Assembly: GCF_001194135.2 (NCBI RefSeq) | Contig: NC_069008.1 | Coordinates: 18,405,390 to 18,469,389, forward strand | Length of the DNA stretch: 64,000 nt | Direction of reading: 5' to 3' | Origin: Octopus bimaculoides | Lineage: Eukaryota | Part shown: positions 14,201 through 63,745 of the stretch, piece after piece | How positions within the stretch are numbered: position 1 is the first letter of the stretch | Layout: the number at the start of each line of letters is the position of its first letter | Program-made: the position numbers and the translations under genes | Notes under the pieces: generated by a model | Databases searched by the model: none | Told to the model about the DNA's origin: nothing | What the model saw: only the letters and a program-made list of their open reading frames with translations

Positions 14201-17200
14201 TGATGACAAAGCTCTCAGACAGAGAGATATGGATAGAAAATAATTGGTAAGGCCAAAGACTCAAATTTCATAGTTAAAAGGTTAACCTCTCCCTCTCTTT
14301 CTCTTTCTGGTGTCATGGCCAATTGGATCCAGTCTGAAGCAGATACATGGTTTGATTGCCATCAACGAGTTTGTTCCAAACAGCAAAACAATGATTAAAC
14401 CTTGATTCACTCATTCAATCATCATCATCATCATCATCATCATCGTTTAACGTCCGCTTTCCATGCTAGCATGGGTTGGACGATTTGACTGAGGACTGGT
14501 GCAACCGGATGGCAACACCAGGCTCCAGTCTAATTTGGCAGAGTTTCTACAGCTGGATGCCCTTCCTAACGCCAACCACTCAGAGAGTGTAGTGGGTGCT
14601 TTTACGTGTCACCCGCACGAAAACGGCCACGCTCGAAATGGTGTCTTTTATGTGCCACCCGCACAAGAGCTAGTCCAGGGGCACTGGCAACNNNNNNNNN
14701 NNNNNNNNNNNNNNNNNNNNNNNNNNNNNNNNNNNNNNNNNNNNNNNNNNNNNNNNNNNNNNNNNNNNNNNNNNNNNNNNNNNNNNNNNNNNNNNNNNNN
14801 NNNNNNNNNNNNNNNNNNNNNNNNNNNNNNNNNNNNNNNNNNNNNNNNNNNNNNNNNNNNNNNNNNNNNNNNNNNNNNNNNNNNNNNNNNNNNNNNNNNN
14901 NNNNNNNNNNNNNNNNNNNNNNNNNNNNNNNNNNNNNNNNNNNNNNNNNNNNNNNNNNNNNNNNNNNNNNNNNNNNNNNNNNNNNNNNNNNNNNNNNNNN
15001 NNNNNNNNNNNNNNNGCTTCTTATGTTCAGCTTTTCTCTCAAGATACTTACACTCTGACAGGTATGCACATTTACATTACACATCCAGCGGAGCATACTG
15101 GCTTCATTCCTTGCGAGCTTATGCATGTCCTCAGCAGTCACAGCCCATGTTTCACTGCCATGTAGCATGGCTGTTCGTACACATGCGTCATACAGTCTGC
15201 CTTTTACCCTGAGTGAGAGTCCCTTTGTCGCCAGCAGAGGTAAGAGCTTTCTAAACTTGGCCCAGGCTTTCTTATTCTAGCAGTTACACTTTCAGCGCAC
15301 CCACCCCCACTACTAACTTGGTCACCCAGATAGCGGAAGCTATCAACTACCTCTAGTTTTTCTCCCTGGAATGAGATAGAATGAAATCACACTCTGTTGA
15401 CTGAGAGAAAACGGGATAGATTGGGTAAGAGTGAGAGGTTTTCCTTTTCCTATACAAAGATAAAAACATTACTGAAAGCGAGTGGGATGGCCATAACTGG
15501 AATGCTTTAGATCATAAGTCTGATAAAAGAAAATAGTCTTTGACATACCGATGAGGGCAGTCCTTGCAAATTTTTTGGTCAGAGAAAATTCCTTGAAATT
15601 TACGTTTGAAGATTTCATCTCGTCCGATTCGCTGGAAATGAAAGACAAAAGGTGATTAAGAAATTCCTCACATAACAGAATCAATCGATAGATTACAGCC
15701 AACACTGCATTGGTAAATCAATTCAGATCAATTAATTACATTGAACAACTGTTGTTGTTTCCACACAAATTCCACATTGGACAGAAAAAGAGGGACCAAA
15801 GACTAGTTTCCATCCTTATGAAGATTCATCAGGAACAAACAACCCTTCTCTAAATGGCAGGCAAGAGAAAGCACATCAGACATTTTAAAAAATATAATGC
15901 TCTGAAAGTATTGCTTTTGAAGCCTGGTACTTGTTCCATCGATCTCTTTTGCTGAACCACTAAGTTATGGCGACATAAACACCAACAGTGCTTGTCAAGC
16001 AGTAGAGAGGGACAAACACAGACACACACACATAACTACATATATACACACACACAAAGAATAATGGTTGAAAGCTGTAAAGATTGCTACAGACTCATTT
16101 TTTTCATTTAATGGCCTAGTCATGCTGTAGCAACACTTCAAGGGAACAGCTGTGGCCCCTTGAGCAAATGTTTTTTAATATAAATACTAACATTAATTTA
16201 GCCAATACTAACCATACCCCTAATAATATTAACAAGGTTATTGTCTCTGAAGTCAATTCCAACAGAATTAAGTTTATGTCTAGTAATTCTAAGACTAAAA
16301 ACTCTATATACCAGTGTAAAATTACTTCCGGTACCTTTTTTATATAGGCAGTAGTTCTTCTCAGTTATCCAAAAGAATTTCTAATCATTACTCTACATAT
16401 AGGGATAGTAATAAACGCAACGGTACAGGGCTTAGTAAATTAATCTGGTATCTAAAAGATCATAATAAACAATTTAATTTAGATTGGTTGATTCTCTCCA
16501 TTTCATTCTCAGGCAGGAAAGGTAAGTGTGAAAAGCAAGGTTGGGCCAGTTTGAACCTAAAACAAGAATATTTGAGCTGGATGCAGCTGGTTTAAATGCT
16601 GAAGGGTCAATAGAAATAATAATTTCTAGAAATGCAAACCAATAAAAAGGCAGAGCAGTGAAATTGAAAGGCAGACCCTACTGTCTATATGAAGGCACAT
16701 CACACATTTGACAATGTTAAGAGGATGGGGAGGAGTGTCACTTACTTTCATATGTTCATCGACTTGATCAATAAGAGCTTGGAAGAAATCAAATGCATCT
16801 TGTTGTTCGTGGATATTTATCGTTTGACCCCACAGTTTAAATACTTTCCAAAAACTCTCTGGTTCGTGGTACTGAAGCTTGCTATCAGTCAGATGTCCGA
16901 AAATCTGTTGTACATGGTAATACACACTGCAACAAGAAAAAGATATCCGTGGCAATACAGTTACAGGGTTACTGTTTCTGTGTTAACTGTGAATGTGCCC
17001 CCCCCCCCCAGCTTTGGTGTTCCTTAATTTTGTCAGAGGAAAAAAAGATTTTTAAACCACCTCAGATTGTACAAGAGGAAAAATCATACTTCTTACCTGT
17101 CTTCATCTACTTCCTCTTCATCGACAGACAAAATAAACTCAGAGATGCCAGGTGCCATGTAGATCTGTTGTAGGACGGAGTTCATATAGCAGGTGGCACC

Positions 17201-26500: not shown

Positions 26501-29500
26501 TTAGAAAGAGGGGGGGTGCATTGGAGAAAGTGGCCTCGTGCCAAGTGATGAGAGATTAAAGTGAGAGAAACAGGTGTGATGATGTAGAGGAGAAGATAGA
26601 TGGTCAGCCAGTGAGAGGGAGAGAGCAAGAGAAAGAAAGAGTGATCAAGAATGTGAAAGAGAGAGAGAGGAAGAGAAAGGAAGAAAGAGAAATGGTGGTG
26701 AAGTTGCAGGGATCAGAATATAAAAGGGATTTCATAGAATATGGTGAAGAGTGCCTGAATAAGGAGTAGGGGCTTCATATAGTAACGGATCTGAACAAAA
26801 AAGGTTAACAAAGAAAAATAATAAAAGACAAAAAGACTTGCAAAATGAATGGAATTGTGGATGTGAGGTACCTGGAGAGCTCTGCTACCGGCTCCAGTCG
26901 ATGGCTCTACATTCATACTACCAATCCAGTTGGCTCCACTGGGAGTAGTTTTCACCTGGGGGGACAGGGGGAAATACACTTCACCGGTCACTGTTTGACC
27001 GCACAACAGGAATCTAACAAAAGAGAAAACAGAGAATATACAACTGAGGGTCACCCCAGGGTATCACATTAACAAGGATAAACTGCTGAATGATGAAGGA
27101 AGAATTCTCGTTCAGATCAATCTTTCATACACACATTATAACAGACAGATTTCCTTATTGCCCACAGGGGGCTAAACATAGAGGGGAGAAACAAGGACAG
27201 ACAAAGAGATTAAGTCGATTACATCGACTCCAGTGCGTAACTGGTATTTATTTAATCGACTCCGAAAGGGGATTACAGATAGATTTTATAAGTATAAAAT
27301 ATATGTGTGTGTGTGTGTTTCAAGTGGTGTACAAATATTGTATATTAAGAAAAAGGAGGCAGTCAGAATTTTGGATAATCTAATAGATAAAAAGTAGAGA
27401 TGTGTGTGTATTTGCTTTTCACGTGAAAACGGCTTCACCACTTACTTCCATACTTGTGATGCATGAATAATTTGACCTCAGACAGATAATAGGATATTTT
27501 TTTTTTTTTTTAAATATCAAATATTGCTTTATATTTATGATTCACTTTTTTAAAAAAGGTTTCTCAATGACAACTTCTGGTATTGACATAAAAACGGCAA
27601 AGTCTCTCAGTCTTCATTTTATTGTTCACTATTTGTAAACAACTACGAAAAATTATTGAAAGAAATATTTAAAAATTCACAAATTTAAATATTTGGTACA
27701 AGATACTTTTTTAACATGCTTTTATTTATATGATTTTTTCATTCCATGTTTATCTCATTCATTGTTTGCAATATTCTATCTCTCTCTCTCTCTCACACAC
27801 ACACACTCTTTCTCTCACACACACACACTCTCTCTCTCTCTCTCTTACACACACACACTCACTCTCTCTTTCTCTCCAGGTTTCACTTTGTTCTGAACTC
27901 GCACCCTTCGTTAATTTCCGTATATATATACAGGTATGTAGATCTATTATATATCTATGCCTACTGTCAAGACATCACTGACTTCTTTCGTAGCTGTTCA
28001 CCCTTCTAAAAGTCTATCCTCTGCCCCCTTTTCCAGGCCCTTCACATCAAGTATCCCAATTATTGATATGTCCATTATCCATACTGCTGTCAACTACCCA
28101 AAAGACCTATGATCACAGATGTTCCAACCATGAGCTTCCCATTTACTACACCAAAGGCTACATCGTTCAAAGATCCCTTTTAGTTTCTAGAACAAAGTGT
28201 AATTTGAAGATTTGGTTCTTATTTCCAGCACACTGGGTGGCCCTGTAGAGGCAGTCCTTTAGGGTCCATGTGTGCATGAAGCTGTAAGGTATCTGAACTT
28301 ACTTGGTTAACTGTAAAGAGATGGAGTATGCTGCCTGACGTATGGCGTATGGTACGTCTGTTGCCATGGCTTCTGGCTGAAGGATGTGCATCACTAACGC
28401 CAGGCCACCAGCCAGCAGGAAGTCCTCACAGAAACGCTTGGCACTGTGCTGGACCCCAACCTCCTCACCTGTTGGCATCAATTTACTGCTCAGCACCTGC
28501 ACAGAAAGAGAGGAGAAAATAACATGCCGTGGCTATGTATCTATTTATTTAGATAAACAGAGATACATACATATACATGTACACACACACACAACATATA
28601 TACACACACACACACGATATATCAGGTGTTCTGAAAAACATGTATACACACATTGAATGATCATAAAGAAATTTTCAAAATTCAATAGAATCTACAGACA
28701 AAATTTGACATTTTTATGAATGCCAGATTCCAAACTGATGACCATTTCTAATCCAGACAATGTGAAGAAATGGACCCACAAACATCAAGAAACATTTCAT
28801 TTGCCATTTGTACTCCATGGCTGGCCTCAGTTTGTTCACTGTTGCTGGTTACAAAGTGTAACATTTCATCATTTAAGCATCCCCATGATAAAAAGGCCCA
28901 GTGGTGTAAGGTCTGATGAATGTNNNNNNNNNNNNNNNNNNNNNNNNNNNNNNNNNNNNNNNNNNNNNNNNNNNNNNNNNNNNNNNNNNNNNNNNNNNNN
29001 NNNNNNNNNNNNNNNNNNNNNNNNNNNNNNNNNNNNNNNNNNNNNNNNNNNNNNNNNNNNNNNNNNNNNNNNNNNNNNNNNNNNNNNNNNNNNNNNNNNN
29101 NNNNNNNNNNNNNNNNNNNNNNNNNNNNNNNNNNNNNNNNNNNNNNNNNNNNNNNNNNNNNNNNNNNNNNNNNNNNNNNNNNNNNNNNNNNNNNNNNNNN
29201 NNNNNNNNNNNNNNNNNNNNNNNNNNNNNNNNNNNNNNNNNNNNNNNNNNNNNNNNNNNNNNNNNNNNNNNNNNNNNNNNNNNNNNNNNNNNNNNNNNNN
29301 NNNNNNNNNNNNNNNNNNNNNNNNNNNNNNNNNNNNNNNNNNNNNNNNNNNNNNNNNNNNNNNNNNNNNNNNNNNNNNNNNNNNNNNNNNNNNNNNNNNN
29401 NNNNNNNNNNNNNNNNNNNNNNNNNNNNNNNNNNNNNNNNNNNNNNNNNNNNNNNNNNNNNNNNNNNNNNNNNNNNNNNNNNNNNNNNNNNNNNNNNNNN

Positions 29501-35500: not shown

Positions 35501-38500
35501 AATGGAAAAGGTGTCAGATGTGATGAAACAACCAAATTATAGGGTAATGTCAGCTGATCAGGTTTTGAAGTCATCCTATTGTGGGCCCTCATCCTTATTG
35601 CGGTGATGAGGTTAGGGTTTTGAGGGTTAGCAACTTAAAGAACAAAGAATATGTAAATATGGGGCCAGGCTTGAGGGAGATTTAGCTGCTACATTGAAAG
35701 AGTGCAGTGGTGGTGTAGAGGGTCTTTTAATGCCTTTGCAGGTTGACAGCAACAACGGTCAGGGGGAGAGGGAATAGGTTGTGTGTGATGGTTGTGCAGG
35801 AGGAGGGAGTATGCTTGTGGTGGTAGTGGGAGAAGCTGTCATGATAATGGAGGTGATGGCAGAGGTGCAGTGAGATCGCTACAGCAATAAAACCCTGCAA
35901 ATGTGCAGAATTAACAGCACCCCCACCCCACCGCCAAACCACATTCAGTAATCCAAAGGTAATAACCCACACTTACTTCTTTCACCTGGTTGTTTGATGC
36001 AGCGTTACTGGCAGAGCAGATACGCACTTGCAGAATCTGGTTGTCTTCAAAGTCTAATTGATGCAGCAGTTTCTGGTCCTTGTTACAGCTCAACTGGAAA
36101 AATCAATGGCAAAGTTCGTTAGAGAAACAAGACAGATTAACGAGGTGACAATTGAAAACTGGGAGAAGAGGGAAGCAAGCACAGAATAGCAGAAAGACTC
36201 AGGCCTGTAAATTGATTGACGAATGGTTTGTTATGTTGCTGGGTGGCTGTAGACATGACTGATGACTGGTTAACATGTTCACAGCCACAAGGTTCACAGT
36301 TCAATCTCATTACATGGCACTTGAAGCAAGTGATTTTATCAATCCCTTTAGATGGAATGTGACTTAATCTAAAGGGCCATCCTTGTCCCACTGTATTGAG
36401 TTAAGTGATTTCTACCCTAGCCCCAGACCACCGAGCAAGGGCTAAAAGCAACCCCATCAGATAGGATGGGACACAATACACCACTCAGCTTTCGATGTCA
36501 TCAGTGGGGTCCAGCAACAAACATTGACAGCAGTTCCTCAATAATTTACGGGACGAGGTGGTTTCCCCTTTGCTTATCTCTCTCTCCTGGAATCCCTATA
36601 AAAGGGATGGCTGATGCTGTGGTTCCTCATCTGACAAAACCATTAAATAAATCATGTCACATGTTATTGGTGTTAATTATTTGATTTATCAAGACGTAAA
36701 GCATCATCATCCTCATCATTTAACATCCGTTTTTCCATGCTGGCATGGGTTGGATGGTTTGACAGGAGCTGGTAAGGCTGGGAGCCACACCAGGTTCCAT
36801 TGTCTGTTTTGGCAGGGTTTGCTATGGCTGGATGCCCTTCTTAGTATGCCAACCACTTTACAGAGTGGCACTGGGTTGCTTTTTATAGAGCACCAGCACC
36901 AATGGGGTCACCAAACACTTGCAGGACAAAATTCCTTGGCTAGGAGAGGGGAGTAGTATTGAAGCAGGGGTGGCTTTGTGCAGGTTGAGAGAACTGAAAG
37001 GTATAGTGGTGACAAGGATAGGGGTCTTGTTGCAAAGTCAATACAGGGATATCCCAGTTGGAAAAGAAAAAGAAAACAAGTTAGAGAATAAGAAAAGAGA
37101 GTGAGTGAAGGAGGACTAAAGGAGGACTGGGGTGGCAACCGACTGGAGTCTCAACACAGGGATTTTTGCTTTTTTTTTTTTTGCATGATACTGGTGAGGG
37201 AGACATTATCACCATGGTGACTGGAAGATAGACACCCCCCACCCCACTTCCACACCAAACTACACAAAATGCAGAACAATTGTGCAAATTACCAAAAAAC
37301 AAAGTAACACAAACTATAAAAAAAATAAACAAGCAAAAACAGTTTACTTACAAGTTTCTCATTTGCATAAATCTGAATTTGATCAACAAACTGTCGGAGA
37401 TGGTTGGCAATCTTGATCCTCACCAACGCTAACATTTCATTACTATGGCTCTACAGATAGAAACAAGATTAATGCATGAAGATTAACGTATGAAGAATAA
37501 CGTATGAAGAATAATGTACAAAGATTAACACATGAAAACTAAAACACAGATTAATGTATGAAGATTAATGCATGGAGATTAATGCATGATGAAACTTGAG
37601 ACAGGAATACAGAGAGGAGAGAGGAAAGGCGGGAAAGAGCAGGAAGAGACTCAGGTGGGTGGGGGCAGCTAGAGACATGCAAGAAGAAATAGAGGGACAA
37701 ACATAGAGAGATATAATGGGGGACAAAAAAAAAAAAGGGCTGGCATCAATACTGACCATCAAGACAAACTCTTGCTTCTGTAATTCTGATGAGATGAACA
37801 GATTAATCTGTTGACCCTGGAATGAAGTCCCATGGGGTAGGATACTGCGCGGACTTACATGGACCTCCTCCACGTTTAGGATGTACGCCTCAGCTATCCA
37901 CAATAAACGTTCTATGTTCAGCAGCTTCACTGGTCTACAAAACACACAAACACAGGTTCAAATCACGTTACAGCCGACAGTACTAATATGCTTAGTATCA
38001 CCACCACTCCTAAAATACATGGATGTGTGTATATATGTATTTATATACATCATCGTTGTTGTTTAATGTCTGCCTTCCATGCTAGCATGGGTGGGACAGT
38101 ACCACCAGCACAAGACTTCTGTGATGGTTGTGGCAGGATTTTTACAGCTGCATGCCCTTCCTATAGTGCCAACCACTCAGCAGAGTGGACTAAGCATGCA
38201 TGTAAATACTTACAAGGCACAGATGTGGTGGTGCGGTAAGAAGCTGGCTTCTCAACTGCATGAGTTCAGTCTCACTACATGGGTAAGTGCTTTCTACTGG
38301 GCCAATCAAAGCCTTGTGAGTGGATTTGGTGGATGGAAACTGAAAGAAGCCTGCTGTATACATACATACATGTGTGTGTGTGTGTATCTTTGAGTTTGTG
38401 TTTGACCCCAACCACCACTTGACAACCGGCATCGGTGTGTTTCTGTCCTTGTAACTTAGTGGTTCAGCAAAAAAGACTGATAAAATAAGTACCAGGCTTA

Positions 38501-39783
38501 ATAAAAAAAAGTATTATGGTCAATTTGTCCAGCTAAAATTCATGGTATTGCACCAGCATGGCTATAGTCTAATGACAAGCAAGTAAAAGATGTGTGTGTG
38601 TGTGTGTGTGTGTGGTTTGTTTTGGGATTAATTTGGAATTCTTTTCTCTTTGGCAGAATCAAAGTCAATCACTGACAAAGTGACGAGACTCTTTTGTGTA
38701 ACTCAAGACAGTTCTTGGGGGTTTGTTGTTAGCTGCATTGGTTGAGGGTGTGTATGTGTGTGTGTGTGTGTGTGTTTTGATGCATTCATTCACCCAGGGA
38801 CCTCAAAAGGAGAATCCTTGAAAATTATGACAAATTTTCACTCTTTCTCTGATCGATTGTACGCAGACAATGTAAAACAATTTGCTTTGAAGAAGCCAAG
38901 TATTTAGCATGGTTTTTGAGGTTGGATGTTCGTCGTAGCACCAACCACTCCAAGAGTGCAATGGGTGCTTTTATGTGCCACAGGCACGGGTGTCAGTTGC
39001 ATGACACTAATATCTGCCACAACTGTATTACTTTTAAGCTTGAAGGTTTCAAAGTTGTGATTGCTTGTTTTTAATATGGCATTGCAAGGTAGGTGGGAGA
39101 GGCTGGATCTGGCCAGTCTGAAGATAAAACAGAATATTTGGGCTGGATATGGGTGGTTGAAATGCTAAAGGGTTATCAGCCAAGTGGAAAAAAAAAAACC
39201 AAGTTTTCTTACATACCGGAAGTAAATGGGGTCCCGGGAAGGGGGCCGCCTGGTTTCAACTGTGACTGGATTCTGGTCAGTTTTATTGGCACAGCTGAGA
39301 AAGAGACAGAAAATAGAAAATTCTTAAAGTTGAACGTTCCACACAATTCTATGAACACAAAATGTTCTGCAATATTGAGCAGACACTCATTATCTGTTAA
39401 TGAAATGTTAAAGTTGATCAATTCACATAAAAAAAGGGACAGCAACACACATTCATTGAAATATGAAGGTTGATCAACTCATCACCACCATCACTGGCTG
39501 GTTTAAGGTCCATTTTTCCATGGATCAGACAGAATTTGTTGAGGCAGACTTTCTACAGCTGGATACCCTTCCTGTCACCAACCCTCACCTGTTTCCAAGT
39601 AAGGTAATATTGCCCCTTGGCCAGACGTGTTTTCACAGAAGATTGGAAATGAATCTCCACTTTTAAGATGGAGACATTCATTTCATAAACATCATGTAGT
39701 GTCCAGACAAAAGAAGATGGACACACACACGGGTGCGTGTGCTTATGTCTCTGTGTGTGTGTGCATATACACACGCATACATA

Positions 39784-39863
<80 letters not shown>

Positions 39864-40604: not shown

Positions 40605-40664
<60 letters not shown>

Positions 40665-43600
40665 GAAGAATTATTGCCATTATTAATAACATTAATAAGG
40701 TGGCTAAGCTTTATAATAATGTTTTTGGAGCATTGGCTCTGATTTTATCAAGTGGTATTTTATACCCTCCTACTGCTACTTCCAGTAAATAGTGGTGCAT
40801 CGTTGCATCACAAGTGGTACACCATCGGTTACAGCTATGAGGTTTCCAGCTGAGCTGAACAACAGAACAGCTTGCTTGTAATTAACATGCAAGTGGCTGA
40901 GTACTCCACAGACACAGCAAATGCACTGAGAAGGCTTTGGTTGACCGAGGGCCAGAAGGGGAAGACACTTGACCACGGTGTCGCACAATGGGGCAGCGAA
41001 AGCAGCGAGAAAGTGAAGGATGTGGAAATATGAAAGACAAAAGAGAAACATTGAAATAATTATGGTGGAGAGGATCAGTGGAGGTGGAGTGGAGTTAAGG
41101 TGGAGTGCAGTAGAGGTGGAGTGGAGTGGAGTTGAGTGGAGTGGAAGTGAAATTTCCTGACTTACTTGGATGGTACAGTCCCAGAAGCAACATCTGGTAC
41201 AATGACAGCAGTTAGTATTTTAGTGGCACTGAGAATCACTTGGCCCAGGGCGGAGCCACCAATTCCTATCCGGGCCACCTGAAATAACAATAACAACTCT
41301 TGTTAGTTTCACATTAAATTAATTACAGATTAATTAACCAAAGTTATACAGCAGCAGTCCTTAACGCTGATTACTGCTTCCCCTCAACACTTCAACAATT
41401 CACCATCCTGACTTCCTCACCATGACCACCACAGAAGAAAAGGCCAGTTTGCCTAGAACCCTGTCACAAAACATCTCACTGACCAATGCACTTTACTAAC
41501 CTCCAGTCTGTTGTAACATTCTGTGATGAATTTTTTGTGAAGGTTCACAGGATCCTGAAATGAAAAACAATGCTGCATTAGAGAAACAGTGAATGGTTGC
41601 CAACCCATAGCCTACCACCATTCACTTGCACTCAGCCTCTCCTTCATTCAACAATTCCTGCTCTAATTCGTTTTTCCTACAACATTTCTTGCATCCTTAC
41701 TTGTACCTGCCCCTAACTTTTAAACCGTAGCCCCCCCCCCCCAGTCCACTTCAGGGCACACTCACACAATACTGCAGAGTGACAGACAGTAGAGTTATGT
41801 AATATATTGAAAACAATACAAACAAATTGAGAGATACATGTGCTCAGGGAGAGGACACCAGTCTGCAGGTAATCTGACAAGTTCAACCAATGAAGGAGAC
41901 CTCTACATGGAAGCCAAATATGCAAGAAATAGCAGCCAAATCTCCCTGAAACACACACCCTCTCTGTGTGTGCATGTATGATCCAACAAGAGAAACCTCT
42001 ACATGGTAGCAAGACCCATCAAAAACAACAGCCAAATCTTCACATCACGCCTTAAATCACCTTAAATAAGAAACGGACACATTTGATGATGTAGTCATCC
42101 CTACCCACCACGAAGACAAGACGTTGGACAGTCTCTCAGCCACTTGTCGGTCTTTTGTCCTCTGCTAAACACTGCAACAAAGAAAACTGTCCCTCTTTAT
42201 GTTGTCACATCATTTTAAAGGTGGACGCTCTTCCTGTCACCAACCAATTTACAGCGTGATTGGAAGGGTGTTGTGTATTTTATCCTGCCACCAACACTAG
42301 AGAAGATATCAACCCCAGCATTTTTATTAAGGACTTGTCATGCCTTCAGATGGGTTGCCCAAGGTTTGGTTCTACACTCAACACCTCCTCAATTTGATCC
42401 CCTATTTGAGATGTAAAAAAGAAAGATAAGGTTTAAAATTCAGGTCCTGCATTTCACAGTATTGTATACCTTTTTTATTTTAGGAGTTAAATTTGAATAT
42501 GACATGTCAAGGAGTAATTGGATGGCTGCTGCTGCTATCGTCTCATTTGGGGTGTTCAAACAGGTCTCCCAGAGGAATTCGAGTCCACACAGGTCCGGTT
42601 TCTCAACAATCTGCAAAGAAAACATTAACGTGACTAACAATTGCACAACCATGTTAAATGTGATTCTAAAAATTACAACTACAAAGTTAAATGTGACTAT
42701 AACAGATGTCATAATCACATATGAAGAGCTGATATGAAAGGGGTCCTCCCCACACATCAAGGGCTACAAATAAAATCTACACATTTTAAAATAGGGTTTA
42801 AGGTGTTACCTGTGTTATTTTGTTGGGCCTCTGATAGTGAAAGAAGGAAGGGAGAAAGTGATCATTTATCCTCAAACCAGAGGTAAAAGGGTCAAATACT
42901 TCTCACAAAAAGGGTTTCCTTTACGACCCACATCACACTAAACAAATGCTAAAAGTTACAAGAAACCATTATCGTCTTTTTAAATATTTTACAAGAAACA
43001 AGCATTAAAAATGCTTTAAAACAGTTGATGGGTGCATGTGTTGCACCTTACACCAATAAAACCTTCTTGCATTTCTTGACTTGCTTAAAAAAAACCCTCA
43101 CAAAAACCCCTGCAACCCTCGCACGTATTGTGACACAGAGCCAAGGGTGGCAGTGTTAAACGGTGGCTCCAGTGAGCTTCCGCAGTTTCCATTATTCAAA
43201 AGGCTTGGGTTGCCTTTTGAACAATGTGGAAGCCATACCTTATACTGAGATTGAACCTGCAATCACACAGTTGTAAGGCAAACTTCTTAACCACGCCATG
43301 AGGTAATAAAATCTACACATCTGGAGTCATTCAGTCATGTAAAAATAACAGCAAAATTCTCCTCAAATCTTAGTACTCTGTCTTAAAAATATGACGGAGC
43401 ATTCGATAACAGACTCTTAGGTACACTATGCCTGGATAAAAGATGGGATGGTCATGGTTGGAATATGTGCAGGTGAGGGGGAGGAGCAGCACAATATAAA
43501 AAAATCTGAAAACTCACCAAACTAAGGCCTGTAGAAGATTTCTTCAGTTTATGCTCATAAAGGTTGGCAGATTCAAAAAAGTTCTTCACACAGGTAAAGC

Positions 43601-58800: not shown

Positions 58801-61080
58801 ACCACTTACCGGTGCATCTAAATCATCACTCTCCAAATGTTTTTTCACGTATTCAAAGCCCTTTTTGTAAGCAAACTAAAACAGAAGAGAAACAAAGATT
58901 TAATAGACAGAATATAGTAACCCACAACACCTGGTCCCTCACTGCTCCTTGCTTTGGACTGGATGAAGACAGTTGTGTATTGAATACAACGAGAACAACT
59001 AGAGCCATTCCAGTGGTTTCTAGTGTAAGATCAAGGATGGAGTAAATAAAGACAGCTAGACATGAATCTGTCTATATATAACATAGACATAAATATAATA
59101 TAACATATACATAACGATATAAACTTGCACTTAATAGTTTATATATAAAATACAACAGCTATATATACATACATACATATATATACATGTCTATATATAT
59201 AACAGTGTTTATATATATCATGGACTCTCCTACTGTCGACCACAAATGAGGAGTTTCTGCAATTTTTCTACTGAACAACCTCCACAGATGATTTGTTTCT
59301 AGCAATCAAATGCTTCTGCTGCACGTTAGCTCATTCTTCCCTGCATCTAATCAACGTTGTCCGAACAGGTGCACAGGTGTAACACACCTCAGGTGTTGAA
59401 GTGATTGCAGAGCAACGGGAGATGATGAAGTGCTTTGCTCAAGAACACAACACATCACTAAGTCCAGGAATCCACTTGTATTCATGAGTGCAACACCCTA
59501 ACCACAAGGCAATGCACCCTCACTCATTATATATATAAAATATATACACAACTATATACATACATATAACAGTGTATATATAATACAATAACAACAATAT
59601 AATTACACCTAACAGATTAAGCCATGAGATTGACTATAAAAGGGTAAATCAGGTCCATCAGTGAATGGTAAAGAAGACTTGACAAGGTACTTACCCTGTT
59701 AATGAGGTTGGTGAGCCAGCCATAAGGGTCCTACAAACAAAACAGAGAAAGGAAAAAAGGTATCAGTTTAACCCTTTAGCATTTAAATTTTCTTCCTGTT
59801 TTATGTTCAAACTGATCAGATCCAGTCTCTCACACCTACCCTACAATATCATTCAAAAATATACAAACACACCATTGAAATCTTGAAGCCATGGAATAAT
59901 ACATTCAACATATTCAGAACAATGTGAATAAATAAGCATCAAATTTAACGAAGAAATGTGAATGTTGAAGGGTTGAAGAAGTAAATGGGGTGGGGTATGC
60001 AGTAGTGATTGTCATTTCTTACGACGGTGGCAAGATGCTGCAGTCAACAAAGGGTTCAGTGGTTCAAAACCCACCGTCTCAAACACTGACATATATGTCC
60101 ATGACCAACACATCTCTAAAATGGATCAGTCCACCTAGCTGTGAATAGGCACCACAGCTTGGTGGTTTATGACCAACATGTCACTAAAATGGATCAGTCT
60201 GTTTAGTTCTAAATAGGTACCACAATATAGGAACAACAAGGTACAATAAGCAGTGGTAGCACAATAAAACTGCCAACTGTTTATTTGGGTTGCAGAGCTG
60301 GGAATTGGTAGGAGAAAGCTGAGATCTGCCACACTGAGATGCCCCCACCCCACCGCCCAACCCATTACACAAAGAGGATATTTTCTGTAAATGCCTTCTT
60401 TCTACCCCCAACAAACAAAGAAAACATTGAGTGGTGAAGACCCCCTCCGTTTTACAGAGAAGACACCAGCATTAGTGTTGGGGCCACAATGAAAACGCCC
60501 AATAACGTCTGTAAAGGGAAAGGCAAATGGGTGAGGACAATGTTTGGGCAGAGGAGATGTCATTGAAGACTTGATAATGTGTGTAGAAGCAATGCCAGGC
60601 AGTAACCAGAGAGTAGGAAGTGGTTGGTGATAGGAACAAGATGGCAGTCAAAGACCCCTGTCCACCCACCTCAAACAGAATATAGGAGTGAGATGTGGTT
60701 TGTGAAAGATGAATGAGTGCAAAAACAGGAAGTAAGAACTGACCAAAACAGGACCACTCCACCTTGTTGGGTGATTCCATGGAACATAGAAACAACATGG
60801 GAATTTACACAATAGGGAAAGGATATCAGGTGTGGAGAAGTAGTCTTACGTTTTTTCCTGCTCCGGAACAATTGACAGCATAAAGTTCTCCATTTGGAAA
60901 CTTGTCCTTCCAGTAGGTTTTGTCACATTGTCGGGCACGGTTCTTGAAGTGGAACACAGCATCTTGGTCAAACGCCTACAGAATATAAAAGAAGTGCATT
61001 GAGAACATGAAGCTTAGTCTCCAACACATCAAACATATACATACACACATATATACACTCAACTGTATGTATGTATGTTC

Positions 61081-63029: not shown

Positions 63030-63745
63030 TTCTTTGATATTGCTGCACCTCTTATGTGTCCATAGCTTACACCAGGTACATCTTATGCAGTTTCTACCCA
63101 CGCCTTTTCTACAGATCAAGCAAGGCCATCTACATGAAGGGAATTGTGGTTTGTCTACCTTCCTACTTTGGTTTTTGCTAGATTAACTCTAAGGCCCTTC
63201 GATTCTAGACTTTGCTTTCATACCTGAAACTTCTCCTCTAGTTCTGATAGTGAATCAGCTATTAGACCAAGGTCACTGGCATAGAAAAGCTCCCAGGAAT
63301 ATCCTGTCTTGAATTCCTGTTATTGGCTGTAGGACTATAATGTATAAGAGGGGGCTGAGGACTGATCCTTTCTTGGTGGACCCTTACCCCTACCTGGAAT
63401 TCTTCACTGTACTTGTTGCCAACCCTCACCTTACTGACAGCCTCTCTGTACATGGCTTGTACAGCTCTCACTAACCACTTATCTATCCCTAGTTTCTGCA
63501 TTGACCACCAGATAAGGGATCGGGGGACCCTGTTAAAGGCTTTCTCCATATCAACGAAAGCCAGGTACAGAAGTTTATCTTTGGCTAGGTATTTCTCCTG
63601 CAGCTGTCTTACCAGAAATATAGCATCAGTGGTGCTTTTCCCTGGCACAAACCCAAACTGCATCTCATCTAGACTCACTCTCTCCCTAATTAGTTGGGCT
63701 ATGACCCTCTCCATGACTTTCATTACATGATCCAACAACTTTCAT
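63030..63745 (-). mobile_element. RTE-clade LINE ORF2 fragment (reverse transcriptase), inactive
   Basis: QFGFVPGKSTTDAIF, LAFVDMEKAFNRVPR; after a frameshift WELFYASDL (YADD decayed), LRVNLAKTKV, and a Cys-rich PCLICRKGVG..CTWCKLWTHKRC segment. Confidence 0.9.

Follow-up and report, generated by a model that had tools for sequence, protein, structure and literature searches.

A probable lineage-specific, constitutively spliced 78-nt exon in the USP24 orthologue of organism A and its relatives

Gene and locus

The window, i.e., the whole 64-kb stretch of DNA that was analysed, carries on its minus strand a gene for a ubiquitin-specific protease (USP, peptidase C19), with the Cys box and the His box located in downstream exons at about 17260–17096 and about 10000, respectively. 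The window does not include the 5′ end of the gene and begins at approximately residue 180 of the toad protein. Comparison of the concatenated catalytic domain with the PDB gave matches to USP9X (3e-94) and USP34 (1e-46), with no match to USP24 itself. A spliced query of 385 residues around the 78-nt segment described below returned a frog protein and a “USP24-like” protein from the colugo (Galeopterus), and a search with the frog fragment (P0002) against 1.84 billion representatives retrieved full-length proteins, most of which are named USP24 or USP24-like by NCBI. The named USP24 matches come from Galeopterus, Bufo, Antedon, Exaiptasia, Pycnogonum, Limulus, Branchiostoma, and Varroa, and a krill protein without a name was also found. 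Judged by its domains and by its best named matches, which are to USP24 rather than to USP9X or USP34, the gene is a USP24 orthologue.

The Pfam domain UCH_UBL1 (PF22900, E = 7e-23) lies some 40 residues downstream of the peptide encoded by the 78-nt segment, and in the colugo protein the Pfam family ARM_UBP24_USP9X-Y is positioned upstream of the corresponding site. Because of this arrangement, the 26 residues encoded by the segment can be placed in the variable linker that connects the ARM-repeat region with UBL1, where they directly precede a conserved helix-like segment ahead of UBL1.

The introns of the gene contain two assembly gaps (runs of N at about 14650–15020 and 28870–29500). Long (TA)n tracts are present at 39790–39860 and 40630–40680. 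Minus-strand open frames at 63265–63741 and 14605–15276 contain reverse-transcriptase-like text, e.g., FGFVPGKSTTDAIF; judged by motif recognition, these frames may be retrotransposon fragments residing in introns.

The 78-nt segment is flanked by two exons that are referred to here, following the numbering of the initial annotation, as exons 20 and 21 (Table 1). Exon 20 starts in phase 0, encodes 37 residues plus AA, and ends in phase 2 at the donor CAA/gtaagt, where the slash marks the splice site; RNA read depth in this region is restricted to 41166..41280. A tandem (CTCCA/CCACT)-like pentamer satellite occupies 41060–41150, directly after the exon 20 donor. Exon 21 begins after ttgtag and encodes (R) and 59 further residues that include the start of the UBL1 domain. 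The initial annotation had described exon 21 as a 76-nt exon ending at the gtaagt at 37858, which has to be revised, since RNA contigs show that the exon is 178 nt long and continues to 37757. The short form is ruled out by the same contigs, which run through the unused donor cat/gtaagt (37853–37858, minus strand). Splicing from this donor would shorten the protein by 34 residues in frame, and the conserved PRSILPHG at the beginning of UBL1 would be among those lost.

Table 1. Coordinates of the 78-nt exon, its splice sites, and the flanking exons in the window
Feature	Position	Strand	Basis
Upstream exon (exon 20), 113 nt	41278..41166	minus	sequence; RNA depth; contigs of X1, X2, X16
Polypyrimidine tract and AG acceptor of the 78-nt exon (ttttctattttctgtctctttctcag)	39295..39320	minus	sequence; score
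78-nt coding exon	39294..39217	minus	sequence; raw RNA joints; RNA contigs; 26-column gap in 7 orthologues
gtatgt donor of the 78-nt exon	39211..39216	minus	sequence; score; RNA joint
Downstream exon (exon 21), 178 nt	37934..37757	minus	X1 contig; contigs of X2, X3, X6, X8, X9; Pfam; L002

Sequence and splice sites of the 78-nt exon

Read on the minus strand from 39320 to 39211, the segment and its borders are ttttctattttctgtctctttctcag/CTGTGCCAATAAAACTGACCAGAATCCAGTCACAGTTGAAACCAGGCGGCCCCCTTCCCGGGACCCCATTTACTTCCG/gtatgt, the exon beginning with CTGTGCC and ending with ACTTCCG. It is entered in phase 2, as (AA)C TGT GCC ... TTC CG(A), contains no stop codon, and adds 26 residues to the protein. 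The final CG combines with the first base of exon 21 into an Arg codon that is invariant among USP24 orthologues. A direct 41166–37934 join would be in frame as well, with phase 2 at both junctions and AA/A coding for Lys. The initial annotation had proposed a frame-preserving 78-nt exon with an acceptor and a CG/GTATGT donor at this position, and both the sequence and the RNA confirm it. As the initial annotation also pointed out, the list of open reading frames displays nothing but another frame over this segment; the coding frame is missing from this start-to-stop list because it has no start codon.

Splice sites were scored with a crude matrix derived from generic consensus frequencies, on which the acceptor and the donor of the 78-nt exon both reach 8.3 bits. 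The acceptors of the neighbouring exons score 0.2–2.2 bits on the same scale, and the donor of the 78-nt exon is at or above those of its neighbours. A pseudo-exon filter (30–300 nt, both sites at 8 bits or more, length divisible by 3, and an open phase-2 frame) was applied to the entire minus strand of the 64-kb window, and just two AG...GT pairs passed it, compared with 0.07 expected from first-order Markov simulations. The 78-nt exon is one of the two. The other pair, at 59695–59730 on the minus strand, spans 36 nt, has acceptor and donor scores of 8.5 and 10.2 bits, and is open in one frame.

The GC content of the 78-nt exon is 55%, compared with 37% across the surrounding 2 kb, and it contains three CpGs; of the “GC/CpG-rich island” seen by the initial annotation, the GC richness is real and the CpG richness is not. 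The unique sequence upstream of the acceptor extends over approximately 220 nt (39295 to about 39516) rather than the roughly 170 nt given before. The 26-residue peptide includes four Pro, three Arg, four Thr, and three Asn and has few hydrophobic residues, a composition from which we predict that it is probably disordered and forms a flexible surface loop. The R-P-P-S in the peptide is a weak match, at the level of sequence only, to an RxxS kinase motif.

Inclusion in RNA

With 37600–39700 as the reference stretch, the joint 37934–39217 was found in the raw reads of the RNA-seq runs X21, X22, and X23 (four, two, and two reads, respectively; eight in total), and is bounded by CT..AC on the plus strand, corresponding to GT..AG on the gene strand. 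All four reads in X21 that cross the acceptor edge of exon 21 enter the 78-nt exon with an agreement of 0.99, while the overhangs at this edge in X22 (two) and X23 (one or two) agree with the joint reads by count only.

Assembled RNA gives the same connectivity over longer distances. In a 1,484-nt contig from X1, exon 21 (37757–37934) occupies record positions 364–541 and is followed by 39217–39294 at 542–619; the contig continues at 620–734 into 41166–41280, i.e., exon 20, and its overhang at 41166 matches the first bases of the 78-nt exon in reverse complement. A 6.4-kb contig from X8 and one contig of 7.5–8.2 kb from each of X2, X3, X6, and X9, which represent four studies, read from exon 21 into the 78-nt exon, and in the X2 contig the record coordinates leave exactly 78 nt between exons 21 and 20. 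The X16 contig joins exon 20 to the 78-nt exon, and X16 covers the exon and not the intron. Of the sampled 31-mers, the RNA runs contain just those that fall entirely within the 78-nt exon. Inclusion junctions are thus found in ten RNA data sets, of which seven are assembled (from at least six studies) and three are raw, and the join to exon 20 is directly visible in three of the seven assembled sets (X1, X2, and X16).

None of the eight raw reads that cross a junction at the acceptor of exon 21 shows the skipping junction 41166–37934, which places the 95% upper bound on skipping at approximately 31%; this count applies to the exon 21 acceptor edge and leaves out about 18 raw reads that overhang the exon 20 donor. 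None of the seven assembled RNA data sets contains a skipping contig; each has a single inclusion contig, with no other contig at the edge of exon 21, bearing in mind that assembled contigs drop rare variants. A literature search on USP24 splicing returned nothing relevant to the 78-nt exon.

The segment is a genuine protein-coding exon of the USP24 orthologue, with canonical AG and GT sites, spliced to both neighbours and included in seven contig and three raw runs. With a length divisible by 3 and phase-2 junctions on both sides, it has the geometry of a cassette exon. A cassette should also be visible in RNA in both an included and a skipped form, and here no skipping was seen, with room for up to about 31% of it. 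The 78-nt exon thus behaves as a constitutive exon and not as an optional cassette. Counting junction reads is a check that the initial annotation had itself suggested for its cassette proposal, and the outcome (8 to 0 in raw reads) does not support the proposal: all eight raw junction reads and all seven assembled sets include the exon. Under constitutive inclusion it is, by the first half of the criterion set in that annotation, “simply an ordinary exon”; the second half of the criterion is conservation across molluscs, and the nearest relative with a non-identical sequence (locus L002, see below) has no such exon.

A separate cluster of RNA alignments is found at 38300–38800, where RNA reads align by the hundred to intronic repeats and GT/TA microsatellites and produce numerous spurious joints and loose ends. 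These joints are not splice events of the USP24 gene.

Comparison with close relatives and orthologues

Genomic contigs of relatives B (39146–39512) and C (39000–39512) align to the window without gaps. Within the 78 nt, B and C show one difference, at 39240, where CCT is changed to CCC on the gene strand (a synonymous Pro to Pro change); both splice sites are unchanged, and the frame is intact and free of indels. Over 218 nt of upstream intron there are five differences in B and nine in C, corresponding to an intron divergence of 2–4%. B and C are so close that purifying selection cannot be demonstrated from a single change in 78 nt. Relative D holds most of the sequence words of the 78-nt exon.

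In a MAFFT alignment of the protein encoded in the window with seven USP24 orthologues, all seven show a clean 26-column gap exactly at the inserted peptide, and the Arg that follows the gap is invariant in all eight aligned sequences. The gap comparison spans cnidarian, echinoderm, cephalochordate, vertebrate, chelicerate, and crustacean USP24. In frog, toad, and colugo, ...SVQSPY runs directly into RSTKLVIIERLL, which bears out the earlier remark that vertebrate USP24 has no counterpart to the exon; the alignment further supports its absence from all non-mollusc animals sampled. From “LTA” to “ERLL” the orthologues have 21–23 residues, and the protein of the window has 47 with the exon and 21 without it.

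A profile search returned mostly vertebrate fragments, together with P0177, a read-through open reading frame on a Logan contig of SRR34434907 (locus L002). This invertebrate locus is the closest sequence found, with an identity of about 62% in exon 21 by hand count. At positions 1642–2256 it contains an exon 20′ of 113 nt and an exon 21′ of 178 nt, whose lengths and phases equal those in the window. The intron between them is 134 nt long and contains no exon, and it splits the invariant Arg codon as AG/G. The homologues of exons 19, 20, and 21 in L002 have canonical splice sites except for an apparent GC donor after exon 21′ (CTG/gcaagt). Introns in L002 are very short, about 134–136 nt. In the window, the codon for the same Arg is CG/A, with its first two bases in the 78-nt exon and its third in exon 21; the last bases of exon 20 are AA.

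Since L002 has the same flanking exons with no exon between them, the ancestral structure was probably a single phase-2 intron. The gap in the orthologues and the lack of the exon in L002 together indicate, on comparative grounds, that the 78-nt exon is a lineage-specific gain. No identified mollusc USP24 was among the matches of the protein searches, and an 89-residue peptide across the exon matched just a genomic open reading frame over exon 21, on a contig that ends 164 bases upstream of the exon.

Copy number and repeats

Contig depth over 39198–39287 corresponds to a single copy in four of four genomic or mixed runs, and no other copies of the exon with its flanks were found in the 64-kb window by blastn or tblastn. 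A very high-copy interspersed repeat is located at 39037–39175, about 40 nt downstream of the donor; in genomic runs of three organisms, the contig word depth of this repeat goes up to 4.7e5, and RNA reads contain it in abundance as well.

Alternative explanations

Based on these observations, we consider it probable (about 0.85) that the USP24 orthologue has, in the 78-nt segment, a constitutively spliced exon specific to organism A and its relatives B, C, and D. A regulated cassette, in which tissue- or stage-dependent skipping gives two USP24 isoforms that differ by a 26-residue, possibly phosphorylated linker peptide, would be compatible with the phase-2 junctions, which keep the skipped form in frame, and with the length of the linker in such a protein, which at 21 residues would match the ancestral one (21–23 residues in orthologues). 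The sampling depth of raw reads is low, so that a minor or tissue-restricted skipped isoform is possible. The RNA points in the other direction, with no skipping among eight reads at the exon 21 acceptor and one inclusion contig in each of seven assembled sets from at least six studies, and the splice sites of the 78-nt exon outscore those of the neighbouring constitutive exons. Skipping would furthermore put Lys in the position of the Arg that is invariant in eight of eight aligned sequences, a replacement that would fit long-standing constitutive inclusion. A regulated cassette is for these reasons unlikely.

The timing of the gain and the source of the sequence allow further explanations. 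The 26-residue segment could date back to the ancestral lophotrochozoan or molluscan USP24, with loss in other lines. Cnidarian, echinoderm, cephalochordate, vertebrate, chelicerate, and crustacean USP24 all share the identical gap, L002 lacks the exon in spite of the same exon lengths and intron phase, and a single gain is more parsimonious; an ancient exon is correspondingly improbable, even with a comparison set that is without an identified mollusc sequence and a linker whose length varies in some arthropod lines with insertions of their own (P0019, P0021, and P0053). Exonisation of a transposable element inserted in the intron might be expected in introns that are full of repeats, as they are here, and with a high-copy repeat (39037–39175) only about 40 nt past the donor. 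This repeat stops about 40 nt short of the donor, the exon is single copy over 39198–39287 in four runs, and blastn and tblastn with the exon and its flanks gave no second match in the 64-kb window. On the single-copy depth and the lack of a second copy in the window, a repeat-derived origin was rejected and is regarded as very improbable. An insertion into exon 20 followed by the gain of a new intron is an alternative to exonisation.

Discussion

We propose the following route to a constitutive, lineage-specific exon. The ancestral gene would have had one phase-2 intron that split the invariant Arg codon between the 113-nt and 178-nt exons. Within this intron, a 78-nt piece bounded by a strong pyrimidine tract/AG acceptor and a GT donor of good quality would have come to be recognised as an exon, i.e., the exon would have originated by exonisation of intron sequence. 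Its 26 residues, rich in Pro, Arg, and Thr, lengthen the variable ARM–UBL1 linker, and the CG/A at its 3′ end now supplies the invariant Arg that opens the segment R-x-x-K/R-L-L-x-I-E-R-L-L. The most likely effect would be that a flexible linker became longer, a change that is tolerated or mildly adaptive.

More specific is a tentative scenario of a young, octopod- or cephalopod-specific exon, derived from an ancient phase-2 intron and fixed as constitutive. In this scenario, the 3′ end of the exon took over the invariant Arg and the old exon end drifted from AG to AA, so that skipping no longer restores the ancestral protein, and a residual tissue-specific skipped isoform may persist, with regulation through the phosphorylatable linker. 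We regard this full sequence of events as possible, and somewhat doubtful.

For annotation, the gene model must contain the 78-nt exon, and start-to-stop tracks of open reading frames cannot display it. Homology-guided prediction from vertebrate or other invertebrate USP24 would omit the exon because no orthologue has it. The locus provides a small, clean case in which a conserved intron of a large and slowly evolving deubiquitinase has gained an exon, and the gain falls in a linker that varies in other lineages too, among them some arthropods. A gained coding exon in a linker is a known kind of event, and no new mechanism or type of element is implied.

The gene in the window shares with USP24 orthologues the order of the ARM-repeat region, the linker, UBL1, and the USP catalytic domain with its Cys and His boxes. 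The identity is 38–52% over a 313-residue region around the site, and the R-x-x-x-L-x-x-I-E-R-L-L motif and UBL1 are shared features. The window differs by 26 extra residues, encoded by the extra 78-nt exon and placed directly ahead of the invariant Arg. Among paralogues with a solved structure, the closest is USP9X/FAF-X (PDB codes 7yxx and 5wch), to which the catalytic domain matches at 3e-94. The blocks that flank the insertion align to USP9X residues 783–845 and 862–1079. USP9X is not the orthologue; at this site it has a linker that is shorter still (about 17 residues) and without an equivalent of the inserted peptide.

For young exons that arise within ancestral introns, alternative splicing with a low level of inclusion is the usual pattern, and a transposable element is often their source. 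The exon described here resembles cases of lineage-specific exonisation in its conserved intron position and phase, in the preservation of the reading frame, and in encoding a low-complexity, probably disordered peptide in a linker between domains. It departs from the usual young exon in being part of all transcripts seen, in the strength of its splice sites, and in the lack of any indication that it came from a repeat.
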